Shown: piece after piece, positions 4,417-62,433 of the stretch
Layout: every line of letters starts with the position of its first letter
Position numbering within the stretch: the stretch's first letter is position 1
Virus record (IMG/VR): IMGVR_UViG_3300042514_000542
Location: 62,001-126,000 of that record
Length of the DNA stretch: 64,000 nt
Direction: 5' to 3' (one strand)
Position numbers and translations under genes: made by a program
Notes under the pieces: generated by a model
Databases searched by the model: none
What the model was told of the DNA's origin: nothing
What the model saw: the letters and a program-made list of their open reading frames with translations, nothing else

Positions 4417-4878
4417 TCAAATTTTTGTAGTGCCATTATAGACATCAATATCGTCTTGTAGATCTTCAATCTGTTTTTGAACTCTTGTTACATTGGCATC
4501 AACTTCCTTACTAGGAATTGTGTTGATATAGTTCACCGTAACGTTGACATACTTACCATCAACATATTCACTCTCCTTAAGTTCCTCAATAGGTTGACCA
4601 GAACGGAATGAAGTCCAAAATGCTAGTTCAGCCTTAGCTTCTGTAAGCATGATAAGCTTATCAGCAATACCAACATTGGCCTTGGCAATCCTAGTCTTAA
4701 GATCAATTAGGAATGCCCACTCTTCTTGGAGAGACTTAAGAAGATCATTGGAATTATAATCCTGTTCCACACCCTGCTTATACCTATTGTTGGCTACAAT
4801 TTGTTTTTGTAGCTTGGTGATTCTACCAGTCGTGCGATTCTTTTCCTTTAGTGCTTTTGCGATACTCATTGTGTTCAT
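4417..4878 (-). CDS. coiled-coil hypothetical protein (DIP1984/septicolysin-like pattern)
   Basis: N-terminal IAKALKEKNR, C-terminal IEDLQDDIDVYN; ATG 6 nt after the repeat at 4885. Confidence 0.45.
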   Translation of the reverse strand: MNTMSIAKALKEKNRTTGRITKLQKQIVANNRYKQGVEQDYNSNDLLKSLQEEWAFLIDLKTRIAKANVGIADKLIMLTEAKAELAFWTSFRSGQPIEELKESEYVDGKYVNVTVNYINTIPSKEVDANVTRVQKQIEDLQDDIDVYNGTTKI

Positions 4879-13793: not shown

Positions 13794-15293
13794 TTAGAAG
13801 TGTTTTGCTACCCTCTCACGAATCTCTGCAAGCGTCCATTCTCGAATAATTTTCCCGTTGTTGAAGACTTCAACAAATTCACAATTAAGAACATCATCCC
13901 AAGTTGCCTGATCCTTTAGGTAAAATTCACCTTCAAGATCTTTATAGACTGCGAGCAATCCTTTAGCCGATTTCTTCATACCACTAGTATCAGTTTTAGG
14001 ATCTTTGTAAATTTCCACCAATTCTCCATTCTTAACACAAGCTGTAGCTTTACAAGCCCACCCATCAGTATCTCTTGTAACCATTTGATATGTAAAACTT
14101 CCGATACCCAAAACAAGATTAGTAGATGCGAAACCCTTAGCTTTAAGACCCTCGCAGATTCTTTCTGCTACCTCTAAAGTCACTCCATCACCAAGGATAG
14201 CACCAACCTTTTCGTGTAGGACTTTATAACCCTTATCATTAACAGTTCCCCCAAAAATATCCCATAGAAGTTCAACAGTTCCCAATCTTTCGGGACTACC
14301 TTCTGGAGCATCAGGATCACCAATGATAATTAGAACATTATCACCACTATCAGGTCTAAATACCGTTTTATTAACGAAGTGTCCTTCACGGGAAAGGATA
14401 GCCCTTTGCACATCTTCCTCTCTAAGAGTTACGTTTAGGAAAGACCAATAATCGTAGGTGTCAGAAACTAAGCTAACAATACCATAAGGTTGAACTTCAG
14501 TGATGATGTGAAGCATCATTTCCTTCTCGCTTTTATCTCCCCACGAAGAAACCACGCTATGCTCAGTTGCGCTCACACTACATCCGACTAATTCTTCATC
14601 CGAATTAGCATTGTAATACTCTTCGGCAAAGTCTACACCCCAAACAGTATCAGTTCCTACGAAGCTAGTTAAATGCCCCATATCTACTAATGCAGCAGCC
14701 TCGGTTCCCATACAACCACGGGCAGAAAAATTATGACCCTGAAAAGGAACAAATGTTTCGTCACCAGTTTCCTTAGCATATTTTTCAAGCAAGAGTCTAA
14801 ACTGATTTGCGGTAGTCGCAGAAGTAGATAAAGGCCAATAATTAGCACTAATAATAGTTTCAAGATAATTAGTTACCCAAAAGAAGTTTTCATCATTAGG
14901 TTTAGTATTCCAATATTGAAATGTCGGAACCTTATATGGAACCTTACTACCTTCAGGGAGAGCATATACTTGGATAGGTAGATACCCTAGATCATGTAAT
15001 GCTTCCATGTGCTTAGTTCCTACAACATTCTTCTCTCCCAAGTAGTTATTAACCCTTCTAGTAAAGCGTTTAATTACCTTTTCCTTTGGTTGATCAAAAA
15101 ATCCATTCCATTGGTTGATGAAAATCTCTTTAATAACATACTGCATACCTAGTGCAACTACATGTTTCGGAATGTTTTTTCGATAGGATTTTCTAGGAGT
15201 TCCATTACTCACTACTTGTTCGGTATCTGGGTGATAAGCGTTCTTATGGAACATTTTATACCCATCAATTTGTGTTTCAGCGTTGTTTTGCAT
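13794..15293 (-). CDS. nadV: nicotinamide phosphoribosyltransferase-like (Nampt/Namat family)
   Basis: IDGYKMFH, YLETI, HNFSARG, HLTSFVGTDT, ATEHSV, SLVSDTYD, RPDSGD, ILGDGVT, KDPKTD..KKSAKG. Confidence 0.9.
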   Translation of the reverse strand: MQNNAETQIDGYKMFHKNAYHPDTEQVVSNGTPRKSYRKNIPKHVVALGMQYVIKEIFINQWNGFFDQPKEKVIKRFTRRVNNYLGEKNVVGTKHMEALHDLGYLPIQVYALPEGSKVPYKVPTFQYWNTKPNDENFFWVTNYLETIISANYWPLSTSATTANQFRLLLEKYAKETGDETFVPFQGHNFSARGCMGTEAAALVDMGHLTSFVGTDTVWGVDFAEEYYNANSDEELVGCSVSATEHSVVSSWGDKSEKEMMLHIITEVQPYGIVSLVSDTYDYWSFLNVTLREEDVQRAILSREGHFVNKTVFRPDSGDNVLIIIGDPDAPEGSPERLGTVELLWDIFGGTVNDKGYKVLHEKVGAILGDGVTLEVAERICEGLKAKGFASTNLVLGIGSFTYQMVTRDTDGWACKATACVKNGELVEIYKDPKTDTSGMKKSAKGLLAVYKDLEGEFYLKDQATWDDVLNCEFVEVFNNGKIIREWTLAEIRERVAKHF

Positions 15294-27023: not shown

Positions 27024-28259
27024 TTATTTTACTTCTAATAGATATTTGATTCTGATTTGATTTCCATTATAGACAATCAATTCGTCATTTAGGAAAGATG
27101 TGTTTTGTGGCAATGCCCAGCAGGAATCATATCCAGATGGTAATTGACTGAAAGTATGTTTTGTATAGTAAGGATTACCCATCACGAAGTCACAGATAAA
27201 TAACCACCCACTATCACCCTTACCTTGACCCCATCTACCTAGAGTATACCCTAAACTTTTTGATGCTGTTTCAGATCCGTAAGTCCCGTTTCCAAAGGCT
27301 TTTCCGGCTATAGCGACAGTAGATGGTGGACTAGGTTGTAGACCACTTTTTAAAATACTGAGAATATTTGCGGAAGAACTTCCATGCCACACTTCCTTAA
27401 CATTCACCGGATTCTTCACAAAGTTAGCATTGTAATCCACAATGTCAACCTCATAAATGTTGATAATTTTAACATGTTGATAATGATGCATTGGTTTATT
27501 CGTGCTATTATACCAATCTTGAATTTTCTTAATAACCTTGGGATCAGTCACCAGAGACATATTGAGATTGAATACCTTTTCAGTAGAAGGTTTAGTGGCA
27601 TCAACAGGTGCTTTAAGTGCCATTTCAACACTGTTATCAAGAGCGTCCAATACATCAGATTCCTTCTTAACTACATCAACATTTGGAAAGATATTCTCAT
27701 ATAATAATCCACCACCCTTTGGTCTTGGGATGATCTTAAGATAATCATCAATTTTTTGATTGAAATCATCCTGACCATTCTTCTTAATGTTTTTGAAGAA
27801 GTAATCGAGTAGAATACGTGCCTCTGAGATACCCTCTTTGGTTACGATACCCAAGGGGGTTTGGAATACACCGTTATTGAAACTAATACTAGTTGAGTTG
27901 GTGATCTTATGGACATTGCTATCTGCAAGTCTCTTAACAAGAGTCTTAAGACTACTATCCGATAACTTAATTTGTGATAAGGCGATATCCGCCAATGACG
28001 TATTAGCAATAACCTTATTGGTTACAGCACCTTCCATTAGGACTTTAGCATGAGTATAACCCTTACGTTCCTTCTCACGGATTTTCTTATCAAAAAATGA
28101 CTTACCAACACATCCGAAATCCTTTGATTGTGGGTTCTTTGCCCCAACTACACCAAATTCCGCCATAACTCTTCCGTCGTCATGTAATTCGGCTTGCCAA
28201 AACTTATATGAGTTAGCTTTTAAGTCTGAGAAAACGAGCTTTACTTTTTCTTTTATCAT
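27024..28259 (-). CDS. WGR-domain PARP-like ADP-ribosyltransferase
   Basis: N-terminal WGR-like region (SYKFW..EFGVVG); catalytic WHGS..N..SIL..GL, G.AFG.G.YG, NDELIVY. Confidence 0.85.
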   Translation of the reverse strand: MIKEKVKLVFSDLKANSYKFWQAELHDDGRVMAEFGVVGAKNPQSKDFGCVGKSFFDKKIREKERKGYTHAKVLMEGAVTNKVIANTSLADIALSQIKLSDSSLKTLVKRLADSNVHKITNSTSISFNNGVFQTPLGIVTKEGISEARILLDYFFKNIKKNGQDDFNQKIDDYLKIIPRPKGGGLLYENIFPNVDVVKKESDVLDALDNSVEMALKAPVDATKPSTEKVFNLNMSLVTDPKVIKKIQDWYNSTNKPMHHYQHVKIINIYEVDIVDYNANFVKNPVNVKEVWHGSSSANILSILKSGLQPSPPSTVAIAGKAFGNGTYGSETASKSLGYTLGRWGQGKGDSGWLFICDFVMGNPYYTKHTFSQLPSGYDSCWALPQNTSFLNDELIVYNGNQIRIKYLLEVK

Positions 28260-35419: not shown

Positions 35420-35443
35420 GTTGTGATTATACTTCGGTTTTAA

Positions 35444-36859: not shown

Positions 36860-36866
36860 AGTGTGA

Positions 36867-37169
36867 TTATACTTCGGTTTTAATTAAGTCCTTCTTCAGT
36901 TCACCAAATGTTTTCGATCTATTATGGTAGCCATATTCAATAATTTCTGATAGATATTTATCATCTTCAAATCGGGCAACTGGTGAACCAGAAAACATCC
37001 AAGATACACTACCACACCATTCAAATTCTGGAAATCCATTATGTCTACCATATTGAACCATAACACAACCACAGGGGTCGTTATCAAGACATTCTCTCAT
37101 ATCAACATTTCTATCATCGGGTTGTGATTCAATCCAATCGTGAAATTCTTTAATTTTTACTCTTTTCAT
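36867..37169 (-). CDS. hypothetical protein, paralog of 10294-10599
   Basis: WIESQPDDRNVDM..CGC; C-terminus LIKTEV is the translated promoter repeat. Confidence 0.6.
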   Translation of the reverse strand: MKRVKIKEFHDWIESQPDDRNVDMRECLDNDPCGCVMVQYGRHNGFPEFEWCGSVSWMFSGSPVARFEDDKYLSEIIEYGYHNRSKTFGELKKDLIKTEV

Positions 37170-37414: not shown

Positions 37415-38266
37415 TTATTCAAAATCGCGGATACTATGGATAAAGGGAAATCTGGGAATTTGCTTATCAGGTGTCTTATTAAAGAAAACCACAGTAGCCA
37501 ATTTACCAATGTAGTTATCCTTGTTATCTAACAGTTCTTTAAGGTATGCTCTATCACCTTTAATATTGGAATTGAAACTATGTCCAAGTTCGTTTTCAAA
37601 AACCATAGCACCTGCAAGCCCCGCACGATTTCCAACACCTTCCACAATATCAAGAATCTTATACTCTTCATCTTGGAATTCTTTCCTCTTAAGAAGATTA
37701 GCAGAACGCTTGAATTCATACGGTGTATCGAGTCGAACCATTTGACCCTCATAACCTCTATCAAGATATGCACCATAAACTTTATCTAAGGTTTCAAGAT
37801 CATCAATTCTTTGTGTAGTTACTCTAACAATACAATCGGGAAGATTAAAATTTTCTTTGATTGTTTTGATCCAATTTTTACGTTGTCTAAAAGTGTGTTT
37901 ATCACTGGCAGTATCATACCACCAGAATTGAACCATTTCGGCACTTTCCACCAAATCATCTTTGGTCGGTTTTTGCTTCTTAATCAAAGATGACATTTTG
38001 TTGAAGTCATGCTTCAAATCGTGGTTGTATAATTCACCATCAAGGATCAAATCTGGATACTTTTCAAATACGGGTTCCAGTGCTTCAAGAATATGTGGAA
38101 TAGTTGCCCAAGGTTTACCATTACGAGACTTTGCCCCATTACGAGTAATCACCGCTCGACAATTATGAACTAATATATCATTAGCGTAGAAGTTATGATT
38201 ATCTTCTACTTCTATATCATATCGATCATAAAAATCTTCTAATTTTTCTATCTTAACAATTTTCAT
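37415..38266 (-). CDS. lig: ATP-dependent DNA ligase C-terminal part, preceded by a 35-aa split intein C-fragment
   Basis: MKIVKIEK..YDIEVEDNHNFYANDILVHN|C (intein blocks F/G), then SRNGK, LDGELY, YEGQM, KRK, PRFP. Confidence 0.9.
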   Translation of the reverse strand: MKIVKIEKLEDFYDRYDIEVEDNHNFYANDILVHNCRAVITRNGAKSRNGKPWATIPHILEALEPVFEKYPDLILDGELYNHDLKHDFNKMSSLIKKQKPTKDDLVESAEMVQFWWYDTASDKHTFRQRKNWIKTIKENFNLPDCIVRVTTQRIDDLETLDKVYGAYLDRGYEGQMVRLDTPYEFKRSANLLKRKEFQDEEYKILDIVEGVGNRAGLAGAMVFENELGHSFNSNIKGDRAYLKELLDNKDNYIGKLATVVFFNKTPDKQIPRFPFIHSIRDFE

Positions 38267-39146
38267 ATTTATTTAAAATCTCCTCAACTCGTTCTTTATT
38301 AATCTCATCATCCCAAATAGTCTCAAAGTTATAATTTAAATTGATTATGTGGTCTTCTTTTATTTTATCTCTTTGCCATATTTGTTCCGCTGTTAACTTT
38401 CCATGGATTGTATTGAACATATCATGTGGTTTATAATATTTTGGATTTGCGTGCCAAAAGCACCCGTTAACCTCAATCACCAATTTTTTATTAGGTATGT
38501 ATATATCAACAATTGGGCAAAACCTTCTCTCCATAATTGGATTGTAAGATTTAAAGTATTCATTTGTTTCGGTTTCATATTCTACTCCCAAATCGTCTAA
38601 AATCTGCAATGTATCTCTATGCGGTTTAGATAATCTAAATGTCTTTCGAAAAAATCCCGGAATCTCCGATGGATGCTCGACACCATGATTAGTTATCCAG
38701 TAATCTTTAATTTTTTGTTTAATTACAGGAGATTTAAAATTATTATCTACTCCATATGTGTCTAAACATTTTAATCTCTTTTGTTCCTTTACTATATTTG
38801 ACTGGGATATATTTGTTATATTCTCACCATATTTCTCTCTTATAGTTTTAATTTTACTGGCACTAACACTTGGAAGGAAACATGTATCGGAAATGTTTCT
38901 AGTTTCAACTCCTGTTTCATTTCGTAATCTATCTATAATAACACCAGCACCACCTATAGATATTCCAATTTCTTGGAAATACTTGACTATAGAGTTTGCA
39001 CTCATATGTTCATTAAGATATAAATCAATTAATAAATCATTTGTTATTATTTCTCTAATATATTTTCTTCTATCGTGATTATTTGGGTGTTTCGACAATA
39101 CATCTCTATCCAATATCAAGCTTTCAAATTTTTCCTTTTCAGTCAT
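38253..39146 (-). CDS. free-standing Vsr/DUF559-like (EDxHD-type) homing endonuclease
   Basis: N-terminal repeats (YGVDNNFKSP, HGVEHPSE); C-terminal VDIYIP..VIEVNGCFWH..RD.IK..ETIW; preceded by CTAAATAATATAG-ATG. Confidence 0.8.
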   Translation of the reverse strand: MTEKEKFESLILDRDVLSKHPNNHDRRKYIREIITNDLLIDLYLNEHMSANSIVKYFQEIGISIGGAGVIIDRLRNETGVETRNISDTCFLPSVSASKIKTIREKYGENITNISQSNIVKEQKRLKCLDTYGVDNNFKSPVIKQKIKDYWITNHGVEHPSEIPGFFRKTFRLSKPHRDTLQILDDLGVEYETETNEYFKSYNPIMERRFCPIVDIYIPNKKLVIEVNGCFWHANPKYYKPHDMFNTIHGKLTAEQIWQRDKIKEDHIINLNYNFETIWDDEINKERVEEILNKYENC

Positions 39147-39185
39147 CTATATTATTTAGTCAAAACTGGATGGTTTCAACCAAAA

Positions 39186-39875
39186 TTAGATGGAATTTTT
39201 TAAAGTTTCTGTTCCATCCAATTCATCGACTCTTCGCCAACATTTAAGATTATCTACCCAAACTCTATGATTACCAGTAAGAACTAACTCTTTACCACTG
39301 TCTGTTGTAATTTTATACCAATTAGATGTTTTCTCTTTTATGTCTACTCCGTTCAACATAACACATTTTATAGACTTGTATTCATTCTCCCCTGTAGTCT
39401 CGTTATAAGTTTTAATTTTTGGTAAATCTGTTGTCATAGAATCTAGAAATAATTCATACAACTCATGTATCTTCATATCTTCATTTTCTAATGATATCAT
39501 ACTATATCCATGCAAACATCCATCAAGCTTGGGTTGACTATATACAGGAAATTTTACCTTATCTTTACGGTCTTCCCATTTCTTAGCAAGCATGGGTTCT
39601 ACGTATTCAGAGGTGTCGATCTTTGAGATATCAACATGATATCCAGTGTCCTTCTTCTTAGTCCAAGATGCTTGTGCTTCGAATAACGCCTGTTCTTCTG
39701 GTGTTCTTTGATTTGCACGATTTTCGTTTGTAACTAAACAGACAGTCCATTCCGTAGTCTGTAACTTGCCATTAAGTTGTCCATGAATAGTTCTATACGA
39801 ATCTTTTTCGATTTCTACAGTCCATGTTTGAATCGCTCCCGTATTTGTTCGGGAATATAATGTGGGTAGTTGCAT
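39186..39875 (-). CDS. lig: ATP-dependent DNA ligase N-terminal part, followed by a 110-aa split intein N-fragment
   Basis: PMLAKK..YSQPKLDG|CLHG (intein Cys1 codon at 39516-39518), block B LTGNHRV, W.RVDEL, then stop. Confidence 0.9.
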   Translation of the reverse strand: MQLPTLYSRTNTGAIQTWTVEIEKDSYRTIHGQLNGKLQTTEWTVCLVTNENRANQRTPEEQALFEAQASWTKKKDTGYHVDISKIDTSEYVEPMLAKKWEDRKDKVKFPVYSQPKLDGCLHGYSMISLENEDMKIHELYELFLDSMTTDLPKIKTYNETTGENEYKSIKCVMLNGVDIKEKTSNWYKITTDSGKELVLTGNHRVWVDNLKCWRRVDELDGTETLKNSI

Positions 39876-39882
39876 GTGATGA

Positions 39883-40326
39883 TTATAGTTCGGTTTTAAT
39901 TAATTCGGGATTTTCGTAGATATTTCCAATAATTTCATATTTTTTAAAATCCTTGGATGTGTGGTTAAAGGCTCTACCGACTACTTCTGACTTAGATTCT
40001 CCGATCCTTCTATATATGTAAGGTGAATTAAAACTACCATCATAAAAGTCCACAACCATAAGAAATCTCAAATCTATTCCTTGCATCTGATGAAAGTTTT
40101 TAGATATAGTTTCTAAGATATCTCCCTCATAAATCTCTTTACCGTTTTTATCTTTAAATCCAGTGAATTGCATAACCTTAGAATACTTCAACCAATCATT
40201 GAAATCCCACACATCACCACCCCGACCACTCATTGAGTTATGTTCTACATGATGTTTTTCAATACCATGATGCATTTTATCATTATACCACGCTCTAAAT
40301 TTAATTTCTCTATTCATATCATTCAA
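39883..40326 (-). CDS. YopX family protein
   Basis: REIKFRAW, MQFTG.KDKNGKEIYEGDI, IIGNIYENPEL. Confidence 0.85.
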   Translation of the reverse strand: MNDMNREIKFRAWYNDKMHHGIEKHHVEHNSMSGRGGDVWDFNDWLKYSKVMQFTGFKDKNGKEIYEGDILETISKNFHQMQGIDLRFLMVVDFYDGSFNSPYIYRRIGESKSEVVGRAFNHTSKDFKKYEIIGNIYENPELIKTEL

Positions 40327-42441: not shown

Positions 42442-42482
42442 ATTTTTTGTAGATTATGGTGTGTGATAGGTTAAATATATTT

Positions 42483-43469
42483 ATGCGAAAGTCAAAAATT
42501 AGTTTAGCAGATGAAGAAGCGATTGTCAATCAGTATTTAAAGGAAAAAAATGTAGAAAAATTAAGATCTAAATATAAAACATCATTTAAAGATATTAAAA
42601 ATATTCTAATTAAAAATAATATATATTCAGGTAGAAGATCAACTTCATTGAATTTAAAATATTTTGAAAATATAGATAGTAATGAAAAAGCTTATTGGTT
42701 AGGATTTATTTCGGCTGATGGATCTTTGTCTAAAAATGGGTATAAATTATCCTTTGGTGTTAAGGATTCTGATATATTAGAAAAATTTAAAAGAGCCATA
42801 TCATCTGGAAGCCCTGTATCAGATTTCAACGTATATGATGAGAGGACAGATAAAACTTACAATAGATATAGTCTTCAGATATGTTCTAAAGAATTTTGCC
42901 AATATATAAGAAATCATGGAGTTGATGAAAACAAGTCAAAAGTATTCAAATTCCCAAAGATTGATGAGAAATATTACTCCCATTTTATTAGAGGGTTATA
43001 TGACGGTGATGGTAGTATATGTATAGTCAAATCCAAGGTTATAGAGAATATCAACTTTAGGGCAAATATTATAAGTTCTTTGGAGTGTGTTAACTACATT
43101 AAAGTTTATTTAGAAAGCATCAATATCTCATCTAATAAAATATTTTCCAAACACGACCAAAATATTCACTATATTACATTTGGAAAGGACGTTATTAAAT
43201 TTTTAAATTGGATTTATAAAGACTCATCCGAAGAAACTAGGTTGGATAGAAAATACAATAAATTTATCGATAATCTACATGATTATAATACCCAACATAA
43301 GATTTTTCAAATTAAAAATCATCAAACCGGAGTTACACATAAAGTTAAGAATTTGATTAAATTCTGTAAAGATAATAATTTAAACGATAATTACTTGAGG
43401 TATAATATGACTAATGGAAAAATTCCAACAAAAGGTAAGCACTTAGGATGGGAATTATTACCCAATTAA
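42483..43469 (+). CDS. LAGLIDADG homing endonuclease, antisense orientation
   Basis: AYWLGFISADG and HFIRGLYDGDG; start reassigned to ATG 42483, after TAAATATATTT. Confidence 0.85.
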   Translation: MRKSKISLADEEAIVNQYLKEKNVEKLRSKYKTSFKDIKNILIKNNIYSGRRSTSLNLKYFENIDSNEKAYWLGFISADGSLSKNGYKLSFGVKDSDILEKFKRAISSGSPVSDFNVYDERTDKTYNRYSLQICSKEFCQYIRNHGVDENKSKVFKFPKIDEKYYSHFIRGLYDGDGSICIVKSKVIENINFRANIISSLECVNYIKVYLESINISSNKIFSKHDQNIHYITFGKDVIKFLNWIYKDSSEETRLDRKYNKFIDNLHDYNTQHKIFQIKNHQTGVTHKVKNLIKFCKDNNLNDNYLRYNMTNGKIPTKGKHLGWELLPN

Positions 43470-58750: not shown

Positions 58751-61060
58751 TTATCCAATCAATTCTGTGAAGTTTGCATCGGTGCGAGTTGCGATAAAGC
58801 TAACTAAGATGAACTCAGCAGTTCTCACTGGTTTGATGTAAATATCTGCCCTCATCTCATTACTATCGATCACTTGAGGTGTATTATTCCTTTCGTCACA
58901 AACGATAACGTAGTCATAAATACCTTGATTATTCTTAGCATACTCAAAGATAGGTGTAATAGTGTTGACAAATCTTGTTCTAGTGAACTCGGTATTCGGT
59001 TCAAAAACAAAGAACACTGAGGCTTTCTTAGTTGGTCTTTCTAGAGCTAAGAAACATCTACGAACATTAATTCTATCAAATGCACTTGGTTTTCTACTCA
59101 TAGTCTTTTGACCGAAGATAGCCATACCTTGTGATGGTGAGAATAGAACTGGGTTAAGATTGCTCTTATAGAGTTCGTCACGTTGTTTTTGGTTAGGTGT
59201 GATTGCGATATTCACCACATTTCCACTTACTAATCCTCTGGTGTATCCAGCAGGAGCAGACCATGGGAATTCAGCGGCATCGTTACGAGCAAACGTTGCA
59301 CCCGCCACAGGGGAGAATGGAACCCAAATCTTATCACCTAAGAATTCATCATATACTTGCGCCCAGTTTGCATATACAGCGGCATAGGAAGTATTTTCCA
59401 ATTCGAATTGGTGTCTCATCGCCCAATAGATATCTGTTTGGAAATTTTTATCTCTATCTGATAGAACTTTAGTATTCTTACCAGTGATCATAATATGGCG
59501 AATTGGGTCTGCGATTAGCATACAGTCACCACGACCACCTGTATTAGATGGAAGGTTACAGAAGTTTTCAAACTTATTGAAGATTACGCTATAATTAGCT
59601 CTAATGTCTTCACCAGCAGCAGTTAAGCTATTGGATGTTCTAAGTTCTTCGATCTTAGCACTTAATGCTATTGAGTATGCAGCATCATCGTAGTAAGTGC
59701 TAGATAGTCCTTGCATATTCGTTATAACATGGATAGTTCCAAGTCCTGCTTCAACCACAACATCAATGTCGTAGATTTCGTCATTTTTAACTGCTTCTAA
59801 TGCTCTTTCAAGTTTTGAAGGAATCGATCCCAACTCTTTGGTTGTGATTTGACCAGAACTAAATGTTCCGACAGGATATAGGTTATCTGAAACTTCAAGT
59901 TGTCCAACAAGTGTTGTATATCCAACAGAATCGATACCAGATACAGTAACACCAGCAGCAGAAAGTGTAGTTGTTAGCATACGAACCTTACGTGTTGGAA
60001 TACCAGAAATACCAACAGAAGTCGTTCCAAATTTGTTAGAGACATATGGATTGACAAGAACTTCGATATTTCTATCAGTTGAATCTTCACTTTCTAGGAA
60101 GAATGATACGAATGGCCCACCCGTTTGATTAGGGCGAGTTCTATACGAATCAATAGATCCTACAATCGCACCATCGAGAATATAGTCAAGTTTATATGAT
60201 TCAGTGGCATAAAGACTCTTACGAAGTTTAAACACACCAATGTTAAGAAGATCATCATCTTCTCTACCGTCAATGTTATAATCGGTAAGGTTTTCCATGA
60301 TTTGGGAAATACTACCAGAGTTACCATTTGGTGTTGCGGTTAGTGCAAATTGGAAGGTTCCAAGTGGAACGTTTGTGAAGTTCGAAGTAAAGGTTGAAGA
60401 TACACTTACAGTCTTTGCGCCGATGATCGCATCATAATTAGTTGATGGGTTGATATTAGAGTTATCTGAAACACCGACATAATAACCTTCAAACTGACTA
60501 TTGATAGTAGTTTGAGCTTTGTTAAGAATGATAAGACCAGCTTGGCCAAGTGCAGAGAAAGATGAAAGTTGTGCGCGGTTACAACCAGATTGACTCCATG
60601 TGAATAGAGAACCTTCTTGAATTTGGTTATATTGAGTTTCACTAAGAGTTACATGAACAGGATTCCCCAGAACTATAGTTGAATTAGCAGTAGTTAAATC
60701 TGATCTAATAGAAGAAAGGGATGTGGCATATGCTTTAGCAGGATATACCAACGCTGAATATTCCGATCCGAATCCAGTTCCAGAACCAGCACCATAAGGA
60801 AGACGAGAAGTGTAGATATGTGCAGGTGAATTAAGTAATTCTTTAATACCGTGATAGAAATATCTCTCTGCTGCGTTGGTAGGAACTCCGTAAATTTGAT
60901 CTAAATCTGCCTTAGACGTAATCTTAATTACCTCGTCTGTATAACCTTGGGATGCATATCCAGCAATGAAAATGTTCGTTCCTACGTTCTGTGGAGCGAT
61001 AAGAGATAGATCACGTTCGAAGATTTCGACACCGGGAGATAAAATTGTGCGAGTTGCCAT
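58751..61060 (-). CDS. gp18: tail sheath protein
   Basis: LSPGVEIFERDLS, PWSAPAGYTRG, GQKT, AFDRINVRR, FEPN..FTR, IKPVRTAEFI. Confidence 0.95.
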   Translation of the reverse strand: MATRTILSPGVEIFERDLSLIAPQNVGTNIFIAGYASQGYTDEVIKITSKADLDQIYGVPTNAAERYFYHGIKELLNSPAHIYTSRLPYGAGSGTGFGSEYSALVYPAKAYATSLSSIRSDLTTANSTIVLGNPVHVTLSETQYNQIQEGSLFTWSQSGCNRAQLSSFSALGQAGLIILNKAQTTINSQFEGYYVGVSDNSNINPSTNYDAIIGAKTVSVSSTFTSNFTNVPLGTFQFALTATPNGNSGSISQIMENLTDYNIDGREDDDLLNIGVFKLRKSLYATESYKLDYILDGAIVGSIDSYRTRPNQTGGPFVSFFLESEDSTDRNIEVLVNPYVSNKFGTTSVGISGIPTRKVRMLTTTLSAAGVTVSGIDSVGYTTLVGQLEVSDNLYPVGTFSSGQITTKELGSIPSKLERALEAVKNDEIYDIDVVVEAGLGTIHVITNMQGLSSTYYDDAAYSIALSAKIEELRTSNSLTAAGEDIRANYSVIFNKFENFCNLPSNTGGRGDCMLIADPIRHIMITGKNTKVLSDRDKNFQTDIYWAMRHQFELENTSYAAVYANWAQVYDEFLGDKIWVPFSPVAGATFARNDAAEFPWSAPAGYTRGLVSGNVVNIAITPNQKQRDELYKSNLNPVLFSPSQGMAIFGQKTMSRKPSAFDRINVRRCFLALERPTKKASVFFVFEPNTEFTRTRFVNTITPIFEYAKNNQGIYDYVIVCDERNNTPQVIDSNEMRADIYIKPVRTAEFILVSFIATRTDANFTELIG

Positions 61061-61111
61061 ATTGTTATTTATCTTTTACTTGACAAACTTTATAAAAGAT
61101 TAAATACAAAA

Positions 61112-61693
61112 TCAATTTTCATTCAGAATCTCTACATGCATCTGGCTATATAAGAACGTGAAGCCACTTTCGATCTCTTCACCCTGATCACTTTTTTGAT
61201 TATATGTAATCTGATCAATGCTTGTTGGAAATGCTTTTATATACTTGAAATGAATTCTCTTCTTTTGGAACTCATCAAGACCATAAACAGATAAATCTGT
61301 CATATAATCATTGAAATTAGCATCATCTGGAACCAATCCTTTCTGATTATATACACCAGTTTTATGGTCGTGTAATAAATTCAACCAAGACCATATAGTG
61401 AAATAGTTATTATACATGGAGTCCACATTGAATTTAATGTTAACTGGTGGTGGGGAATCCTTACTAAAAGAAGACTGATACAATGTAGATCCAGCAAATC
61501 GAGTTTCCACACCCTTTACGGCAACTTCTGGTATAACTGTTCCAAATACAGAGAATTGAACACTATCTGGTAAAATGGTGGAATTATTCCTAGTGTATTT
61601 GCTGGCAATTGGTTTTAAAATGGAGGGAAGGTCAAAAACAAGTATAAACTTGTCTTGACGGGCTTTATTTAAGACGCTTTGTTGGATATCCAT
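61112..61693 (-). CDS. tail completion / tube-fold protein (gp3-like)
   Basis: FSVFG..IP, VD..YNNY..IWSW, AFPTSI. Confidence 0.55.
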   Translation of the reverse strand: MDIQQSVLNKARQDKFILVFDLPSILKPIASKYTRNNSTILPDSVQFSVFGTVIPEVAVKGVETRFAGSTLYQSSFSKDSPPPVNIKFNVDSMYNNYFTIWSWLNLLHDHKTGVYNQKGLVPDDANFNDYMTDLSVYGLDEFQKKRIHFKYIKAFPTSIDQITYNQKSDQGEEIESGFTFLYSQMHVEILNEN

Positions 61694-61701
61694 GTTATTA
61701 T

Positions 61702-62433
61702 TTAACTACCCAATTTAGTCGAATTCTCTAAAACTGCATTTTCAATGTATTTGACTACATCTTTGGGAATAGCTTGAAGGACTGACTCGGCTTTTTTTAA
61801 ATCGGTTTCTCTATCTGATATATCAAAAGAAAGATGTTTATCGAAAACTCTCCTTTGGGTGTGACCACCATGAAATATTGAAACAGATGCCCATAAATTA
61901 CCTTGATACTCATCAAACCTACAACTCCAAACAAATCTCCAACCACGTTCCTTTCCCCAGTGTTTTTCCACTTTTATATTATATGCCTCATCTTCTGTTT
62001 TTGGTGGTGGAAACGAGTAGTCATTAGTTTTCCAATCAAATATCAAACCACCAACACCATACTTATCTTTCGCACCTTTAAAAATTATAGGAGATAAAAA
62101 TTTCAAAGCTGTCTCTTCCAAACTTTTTGCGTAACCCACTTCTGGTTCTTTTTTTGGAATTTCTCTACCCAATAATTCACTAATAGCTATTCCTTTCACT
62201 GCCACGATACCAAATCCATCATCAGCTACTATATAATTAGCATTATGACCTATTTCACCATTTAATCCTACCCAATAATCAATAAACTTTTTAGCTTGTT
62301 CTCTTGCGGTTGGACCACTATAAGTTTCAACCGTATCATCAGAATCCCCGCTATGATTTCTATAAGTAACCGTAATTTGTTCAGGTTTACTTAATTCTTG
62401 ATTGTTTTCAAAAAATGTTTTAAATGTTATCAT
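61702..62433 (-). CDS. hypothetical virion protein
   Basis: MITFKTFFE start resembles T4-like head-internal protein leaders; late-type promoter. Confidence 0.45.
   Translation of the reverse strand: MITFKTFFENNQELSKPEQITVTYRNHSGDSDDTVETYSGPTAREQAKKFIDYWVGLNGEIGHNANYIVADDGFGIVAVKGIAISELLGREIPKKEPEVGYAKSLEETALKFLSPIIFKGAKDKYGVGGLIFDWKTNDYSFPPPKTEDEAYNIKVEKHWGKERGWRFVWSCRFDEYQGNLWASVSIFHGGHTQRRVFDKHLSFDISDRETDLKKAESVLQAIPKDVVKYIENAVLENSTKLGS

Follow-up and report, generated by a model that had tools for sequence, protein, structure and literature searches.

The window analysed here, a stretch of 64,000 nucleotides (nt), covers positions 62,001 to 126,000 of the IMG/VR virus record IMGVR_UViG_3300042514_000542 and contains a DNA ligase gene in two parts, with an endonuclease gene between them. 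The record originates from lake water, is 206,590 base pairs (bp) long and rated complete, and represents the genome of a freshwater myovirus. The features described below allow us to assume, with a probability of about 0.85, that a mobile intein and homing-endonuclease cassette is inserted in the sole gene for an ATP-dependent DNA ligase that this phage possesses and that the two halves are joined by trans-splicing to restore the ligase.

The fractured ligase gene and its intein halves

Three open reading frames (ORFs) of the same orientation were found on the minus strand, namely lig-N/IntN, the endonuclease and IntC/lig-C. The lig-N/IntN ORF (39875..39186) encodes 229 amino acids (aa; 26.6 kDa), of which residues 1–119 belong to the ligase and residues 120–229 to the N-terminal intein half (IntN). 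The N-extein (39519..39875) corresponds to DNA ligase residues 1–119 and ends with QPKLDG, containing motif I with the adenylated Lys116. The 110-aa IntN (39186..39518) begins with CLHG, carries TGNH in block B (Thr81, His84) and is closed by a TAA stop. A spacer of 39 nt (39147..39185) separates it from the free-standing endonuclease ORF (38253..39146, 297 aa), the end of which overlaps the start of the IntC/lig-C ORF by 14 nt (38253..38266). This last ORF (38266..37415; 283 aa, 33.3 kDa) starts with the C-terminal intein half (IntC, 38162..38266), which takes up residues 1–35, includes blocks F and G and ends with ILVHN. The C-extein (37415..38161) continues with Cys+1 (Cys36 of the ORF), ligase residues 121–367 and a stop codon; in other words, Cys-Arg (CRAVITRNG) is followed by 246 further ligase residues that make up the remainder of the adenylation domain and the OB domain. 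The cassette inserted in the ligase gene therefore extends over 39518–38162 (1,357 bp) and lies exactly after the KLDG of motif I. Joining the exteins in silico gave a virtual ligase of 367 aa and 42.8 kDa. It was also noted that the lig-N/IntN and endonuclease ORFs share a reading frame (39146–39875), with one TAA and 13 codons between them. This frame is kept in two related loci, L068 and L069, but not in three others (L070–L072), so its sharing is probably a matter of chance.

An initial annotation of this DNA had described KLDG followed by a 110-aa IntN, a second ORF with a 35-aa IntC ending in HN before Cys+1 and the rest of the ligase, and a spliced ligase of about 367 aa reading KLDG-CR. 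The two ORFs agree with this description, as do the length and the junction of the virtual product.

The product was identified as an ATP-dependent DNA ligase of the Felix O1/phi92 type. It has KLDG at positions 116–119 of the N-terminal ORF, an adenylation domain and an OB domain; the Pfam search of the IntC/lig-C ORF returned DNA_ligase_A_M (PF01068; expectation value (E) 1e-9, 38.8 bits, over the cut-off) and OB_2. Both exteins can be aligned over their full length with uninterrupted phage ligases, matches with ligases from PDB were obtained for the C-extein, and the N-extein is 45–81% identical to the N-terminal part of the uninterrupted phage ligases. No other PF01068 match was found in the 206.6-kb genome. 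No counterpart of the locus was detected by megablast among GenBank phages.

The ends of the ORFs were verified using Logan contigs from two lake studies (runs X1 and X2). An independently assembled X1 contig of 11.8 kb spans 38341–40000 with zero differences, and the X1 contigs over the locus contain no indels and no joints. A 360-nt contig from X2, a different study, spans 39021–39380, also with zero differences, and takes in the IntN stop together with the endonuclease start. The independent contigs confirm the IntN stop (39188–39186) and the start of the IntC ORF (38266); an assembly error at the stop at 39186, which the initial annotation had named as a possible objection, was not found, and the stop is real. 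In addition, X1 holds a second variant of lower depth with eight single-base differences at 37799–37931 and five at 38250–38370, which indicates strain microdiversity in the source sample.

The same ORF ends recur in other sequences. A word-index search with IntN yielded 63 protein clusters at 90% identity, nearly all of which are ligase N-fragments that stop 99–122 residues past K-x-D-G|Cys. When 1.84 billion representatives were searched exhaustively with HMMER, 270 IntN matches were obtained at E ≤ 0.001 (50% identity clusters), and in nearly all of the 150 listed of these 270 matches IntN forms the very C-terminus of the protein. It could be argued that the stops at 39186 and 38253 are assembly artefacts or recent damage and that the ligase is a dead, decaying pseudogene, given that the genome is a metagenome-assembled IMG/VR record and that X1 may be the very sample from which the window was assembled. 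Against this stand the junctions shared without differences by the contigs of both runs, the identical ORF ends in dozens of metagenomic clusters and the purifying selection on the locus, the ratio of non-synonymous to synonymous substitution rates (dN/dS) being 0.04–0.13 in all five parts. Such an explanation is extremely improbable and is already effectively refuted; assembly error or a fresh pseudogene is excluded for practical purposes.

Class 1 inteins are recognized by Cys or Ser in block A, TxxH in block B, blocks F and G ending with His-Asn, and Cys, Ser or Thr at position +1. All the corresponding residues are present here: Cys1 (Cys120 of the ORF), TGNH (Thr200 and His203 of the ORF), the terminal VHN and Cys+1. 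These residues and the IntN signature LKCWRRVDEL are conserved across the 63 homologues. The Pfam domain Intein_splicing (PF14890) was matched in register by both halves at scores below the curated cut-off, with its positions 1–92 on the N-terminal ORF (E 3.7e-5) and 122–155 on the C-terminal one, and positions 93–121 are absent from both. The intein is naturally split, with separate ORFs, a real stop and start, and a break between blocks B and F at the endonuclease-insertion site. The nearest solved relative of IntC is the gp41-1 intein (6qaz; E 2.9e-6, 21 of 34 residues identical, 62%), followed by NrdJ-1. IntN and IntC, carrying 5 and 6 extein residues, respectively, were modeled together, and the predicted complex had an ipSAE score of 0.74, against 0.07 for the best of three controls; the mark set for this score is attained by 51 of 78 solved complexes and by 2 of 108 mismatched pairs. 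The dN/dS values of IntN and IntC were 0.077 and 0.057 relative to L068, and 0.19 and 0.13 relative to L069.

Based on the sequence and the model, the following course of events can be proposed. The lig-N/IntN (26.6 kDa) and IntC/lig-C (33.3 kDa) proteins would be translated separately, and IntN and IntC would associate into a HINT fold. Class 1 splicing would then proceed via Cys1, Thr and His of block B, the last two residues of IntC (His and Asn) and Cys+1, joining Gly119 to Cys+1 and yielding a 367-aa ligase of 42.8 kDa that reads KLDG-CRAVITRNG. The suggestions of the initial annotation that ligase activity needs trans-splicing and that the pair could be a new orthogonal intein are both reasonable inferences.

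Insertion polymorphism and mosaic divergence at the ligase site

An uninterrupted ligase was found in about 60 of 63 related IMG/VR loci. In the uninterrupted ligases, the end of the N-extein match and the start of the C-extein match lie one codon apart, and this junction codon encodes Met (36), Leu (22) or Ile (4) and is followed by Arg, while the intein-bearing alleles have Cys. Since about 60 relatives have an uninterrupted ligase with one of these three residues at +1, the cassette is an insertion. In three of the loci (L005, L006 and L011), the sequence is collinear with that of the window on either side of the site, and precisely the segment 39518–38162 is missing. Two apparent deviations were rejected. 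The tblastn alignments suggested Cys at +1 in the intein-less loci L005 and L007, but their DNA encodes Leu; likewise, a tblastn match of the Ruegeria phage RpAliso that seemed to cover IntC was a spurious extension of an ordinary contiguous ligase.

Exact protein look-up retrieved five further metagenomic loci (L068, L069, L070, L071 and L072) with the same order of lig-N/IntN, a DUF7487 endonuclease and IntC/lig-C. They span three ligase subfamilies, and the overlap of the endonuclease and IntC ORFs is 14–37 nt in all six loci examined. Another locus, L003, carries a split intein at the same site, with IntN and IntC as separate ORFs in the same frame, and its endonuclease gene has been deleted down to a C-terminal relic of 26 codons (4646–4752). 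Two ligases, P0214 (523 aa) and P0256 (513 aa), carry, again at KLDG|C, a contiguous mini-intein of ~145 aa that belongs to the same family, P0214 passing the PF14890 cut-off with 43.4 bits; in the series they represent the stage of cis-splicing. Thus, an empty site, a cis-intein, a split intein with endonuclease and a split intein without endonuclease all occur at this insertion point, and this series corresponds to the stages of the gene-breaking model (PMC2677866).

These relatives also bear on the question of whether a peptide bond is formed at all. The intein halves might only dock the ligase pieces non-covalently, or only cleave, and fractured genes that lack inteins and work as two chains do exist, such as the split NrdA of the phage Aeh1 (PMC2677866). 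We consider this very unlikely, however. All class 1 catalytic residues are kept in at least 63 homologues, Cys+1 replaces the Met, Leu or Ile of the empty alleles, and the contiguous mini-intein alleles at the same site must splice to yield a ligase. Moreover, the break lies three residues past the adenylated Lys, so that an unspliced complex would be expected to leave a HINT domain of 145 residues in the active site.

To evaluate the age of the cassette, the window was compared with L068. The exteins show 79–80% protein identity and a synonymous divergence (dS) of about 1.2, whereas IntN, the endonuclease and IntC are 95–97% identical, with dS values of 0.29, 0.51 and 0.20, respectively. In 90-nt windows, the nucleotide identity is 70–78% up to 39556, 87–97% over 39555–38206 and 72–84% thereafter, and this step coincides with the cassette borders. 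The low dS and the identity step indicate that the last common ancestor of the cassette is younger than that of the ligase flanks, and this sequence pattern points to a recent lateral transfer of the cassette. A younger cassette together with the presence/absence polymorphism matches the prediction for homing.

The endonuclease and its proposed expression signals

The Pfam search with the endonuclease revealed DUF7487 (E 4e-8), while residues 214–233 matched Vsr weakly. Among its 144 homologues, several also match DUF559 or MTES_1575, and the Joint Genome Institute (JGI) labels them very-short-patch-repair endonucleases. Asp214, Glu225, Gly228, Trp231, His232, Pro235 and Trp278 are invariant in 43 aligned sequences, and Asp260 is nearly so (at least 90% of the 43). 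The AlphaFold2 model (predicted local distance difference test score of 92.9) has a helical N-terminal half, which corresponds to DUF7487, and an alpha/beta C-terminal domain. Foldseek comparison with PDB gave the catalytic domain of I-Bth0305I (3r3p; target template modelling score 0.72) and E. coli Vsr (1vsr, 1cw0) as the best matches, each with a probability of 1.0 and modest E-values of about 3e-3. A Vsr-type fold, conserved Asp/Glu/His/Asp residues and a separate helical region for DNA binding at the N-terminus characterize the EDxHD homing endonuclease family (PMC3239194), and the sequence and model place the enzyme in this Vsr-like family. The Vsr-like endonuclease proposed in the initial annotation to lie between the halves is thereby supported by fold matches and catalytic residues alike.

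Such an enzyme would cut the intein-less ligase alleles of co-infecting relatives, and repair would copy the cassette in. The target consensus of I-Bth0305I, TTxG-N6-CxAA, is absent within 60 nt of nine empty ligase sites. Alternatively, the endonuclease may be a relic or a domesticated protein that no longer acts in homing, with the cassette inherited vertically; the persistence of the split intein in L003 after the loss of the endonuclease gene fits this. The alternative is nevertheless unlikely, as the 297 codons of the endonuclease have a dN/dS of 0.041 relative to L068, the EDxHD residues are invariant or nearly so among the 43 homologues, the cassette is much younger than its flanks and close syntenic relatives differ in its presence or absence. 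An active homing enzyme remains the preferred reading.

Two promoter-like sequence motifs predominate next to the gene starts of this genome. Motif 1, TTAAAACCGAA-N-TA-N-A-M-T, is located 5–8 nt before ATG. The window contains 30 copies versus 0 expected, every one of them on the minus strand and at a position below 46 kb (69–45884). Genome-wide there are 57 copies, 56 of which fall within 25.8–109.6 kb, and the copies in the window all belong to the non-structural gene block. One copy (39882..39899, minus strand) ends 6 nt before the lig-N ATG. No copy precedes the endonuclease gene or lig-C, the next one downstream of lig-N being located at 36866–36883; a further copy occurs, for example, at 35426–35443 (minus strand). 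The short distance between motif 1 and ATG suggests near-leaderless mRNAs. Judging by its position, the copy before lig-N probably drives lig-N, the endonuclease and lig-C as a single early/middle transcript, and the whole unit would then be read from this early/middle-type promoter motif.

Motif 2 is TAAATA, located 4–9 nt before the start. Of the 287 occurrences in the whole genome, 79 (27.5%) have this position relative to an ORF of at least 60 codons, compared with at most 7.8% for any permuted hexamer; the spacing is 5 nt in 50 of the 79 and 6 nt in 15. Motif 2 precedes the genes of the tail sheath, tape measure and terminase, and examples in the window are found before 61060, 56032, 54113, 49856 and 39146. 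The terminase ORF at the end of the window was at first taken for a truncated one, but it is only cut by the window edge and encodes 594 aa in the genome. The start at 39146 is that of the endonuclease gene, which has TAAATA (39158–39153) 6 nt before its ATG, and the two other free-standing endonuclease genes of the genome are also preceded by a start-proximal TAAATA. Motif 2 is reminiscent of the core of a T4-type late promoter that gives rise to leaderless transcripts. A search for the exact T4 late consensus TATAAATA gave no copy near the endonuclease and only one in the window, where 11 were expected, although it does occur before the endonuclease of L072. There was no enrichment of CTAAATAATA, and a sigma-70 scan gave a number of sites no higher than in shuffled sequences. 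The initial annotation had credited the endonuclease with its own late promoter. With regard to the exact T4 consensus this did not hold, whereas the motif statistics and the TAAATA upstream of the gene support it in substance.

The 39-nt spacer before the endonuclease gene is identical in L068 and has one change in L069, while the flanking synonymous sites are saturated. An RNA hairpin was predicted at 39192–39144 (−14.8 kcal/mol), the outer stem of which is formed by CAUCUA from the end of the IntN ORF and by UAGAUG, which holds the start codon of the endonuclease. On the long transcript, this hairpin would cover the endonuclease AUG. A near-leaderless late transcript from the late-type TAAATA 6 nt before the AUG would be free of the 5' hairpin arm.

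The difference in promoter-class motifs between the ligase halves and the endonuclease also fits another scenario, in which trans-splicing would have acquired a regulatory role as a conditional gate for ligase activity, operated by timing or by redox state via Cys1, Cys+1 or IntN Cys93, and would do more than neutrally mend a selfish insertion. The insertion immediately after the catalytic Lys and the Cys in LKCWRRVDEL, which is conserved in more than 80% of homologues, are in line with such a gate. It is quite unlikely all the same, as most relatives manage with an uninterrupted ligase and some homologues (P0023, P0038 and P0048) do not have the conserved Cys. The reading that we prefer remains that of a mobile cassette whose disruption of the ligase is undone by trans-splicing.

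Several results weigh against this reading. The PF14890 scores of both halves (24.0 and 24.8 bits) are below the curated cut-off of 35.8, as is expected for half-domains, and the comparison of IntN with solved inteins gave no significant sequence match (best E 0.19). The score of the predicted complex may partly reflect the memory that the model has of solved split inteins; since such inteins have already been solved, the score is to be taken as a likeness and not as a proof. The net charge of each half is about −5, so both are acidic, and the simple global charge complementarity of some split inteins is not evident here. The z-score of the hairpin (−1.64) is not significant alone, and its single variant, A to G, gives a G-U pair, which is not covariation. 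Codon or RNA constraints, rather than transfer, could account for part of the lower dS of the cassette. Finally, the sequencing runs listed included no RNA run.

Other free-standing endonuclease genes were found in the genome. One (genome positions 60704–61399, plus strand, ~600 nt before the window start) encodes a Vsr/DUF559-like protein of 231 aa, according to tblastn (E 0.017) a weak paralogue of the enzyme in the cassette, with TAAATA 5 nt upstream. Another encodes a LAGLIDADG endonuclease (42456–43469, plus strand; PF14528, E 5e-9) and lies on the opposite strand, in a stretch of low guanine-cytosine content between genes for 244-aa and 194-aa proteins. These neighbours abut in L005, L006 and L011, with a 4-nt overlap in L006, so the LAGLIDADG gene is a polymorphic insertion.

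Known systems and the wider intein lineage

The initial annotation held the fractured-gene arrangement to be already established, and this is correct. Dassa et al. 2009 (PMC2677866) reported 26 fractured loci in metagenomes of ocean and lake origin, including a Vsr-like endonuclease family and hairpin and late-promoter control of the gene-fracturing endonucleases. Like these fractured genes, the locus studied here unites host-N/IntN, a free-standing Vsr-like endonuclease and IntC/host-C in one place and in one orientation, the 3' end of the endonuclease gene overlaps the downstream ORF (by 14 nt), and a predicted hairpin and a late-promoter-like element lie upstream of it. One DNA ligase split-intein locus, with a Felix O1-like ligase from Lake Gatun, was already among the 26, and this lowers the novelty of our finding. 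It was one of three additional loci outside the five listed as fully assembled, and most of the loci lacked one end (PMC2677866). Both ligase loci come from freshwater phages and involve ligases of the Felix O1/phi92 type. In contrast to the earlier one, the locus of the present phage is complete, is located in a complete genome and has empty-site, cis-intein and endonuclease-less relatives; its downstream gene is also not a 5'-3' exonuclease. A search of the accessible literature found no paper on a characterised ligase split intein. The locus is a well-supported new, complete and unusually well-contextualised example of an arrangement first described in 2009.

Among solved split inteins, gp41-1 (6qaz) and NrdJ-1 (8ubs) are likewise of class 1, are split at the canonical endonuclease-insertion site and have a short IntC (35 aa here). 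The 21 of 34 identical positions shared with the IntC of gp41-1 include NHxFYANDIL-HN. Unlike gp41-1, the present intein is found in another host protein and at another insertion site, with Cys at +1, and its 110-aa IntN has no detectable sequence match with that of gp41-1. The endonuclease resembles I-Bth0305I (3r3p; PMC3239194) in the C-terminal Vsr-like nuclease fold, the conserved Asp/Glu/His/Asp and the helical DNA-binding N-terminal region, but the gene of I-Bth0305I sits in a group I intron of recA, whereas the enzyme studied here is free-standing within a split intein. A similar case is that of mobE in the split nrdA of the Aeromonas phage Aeh1, where, as cited in PMC2677866, a free-standing endonuclease also fractures an essential gene of DNA metabolism, and its late promoter is enclosed in a hairpin by which translation of longer transcripts is prevented. 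The nrdA gene of Aeh1 differs from the present cassette in having no intein and in the HNH type of its endonuclease.

The homologues of IntN are not confined to one type of ligase. By their N-exteins, 150 homologues with motif I were grouped into DNA ligases (60, 24 and 19), RNA ligases (18 of the PHA02142 type and 8 of the Rnl1 type) and 21 short or unassigned sequences; this classification is rough, BLAST against five references having been the only means of assigning the host classes. The maximum-likelihood tree constructed for IntN was based on 105 columns and has many unresolved forks; its well-supported branches force at least 3–7 host-class switches per class. These sequence data allow the tentative proposal, to which we give somewhat less than even odds, that a single large intein lineage (at least 270 clusters, almost all split) may have specialised on the nucleotidyltransferase motif I (KxDG|C) and moved repeatedly between non-orthologous hosts, namely at least three DNA ligase subfamilies and two RNA ligase families, with all four gene-breaking stages surviving at the phi92-like ligase site.

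Separately, P0234, P0246 and about 24 other representatives were noted to be RNA ligase N-fragments that end with K-x-D-G|Cys and an IntN of the same family; they are of the Rnl1 type and the PHA02142 OB-fold type, and one has an HNH domain. The lineage therefore fractures RNA ligases at the equivalent motif as well. A further sequence, P0202, begins like an IntC (…FYANKILVHN|C) and continues with ~27 extein residues, KLDG|C and another IntN; possibly, it represents the central fragment of a ligase that two split inteins have interrupted.

Apart from the cassette, the phage genes include one for a PARP catalytic domain combined with WGR (27024–28259, minus strand; PF00644, E 7e-25) and one for a nicotinamide phosphoribosyltransferase (13794–15293, minus strand; phrog_448, E 1.5e-176), which suggests a phage-borne set of genes for NAD+/ADP-ribose metabolism.

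None of these results overturns present knowledge. For protein engineering, the ligase cassette provides a split intein of compact size (110 + 35 aa), flanked by Gly at −1 and by Cys-Arg at +1/+2, in which IntC resembles that of the ultrafast gp41-1 and IntN does not, and there are hundreds of natural variants to mine for orthogonal pairs. For intein biology, the empty-site, cis-intein and endonuclease-less relatives make the gene-breaking model of 2009 testable at a single site. With regard to the biology of the phage, the endonuclease bears the late-type start signal of the resident phage, and the broken host gene keeps the other, abundant signal, that of the non-structural block.

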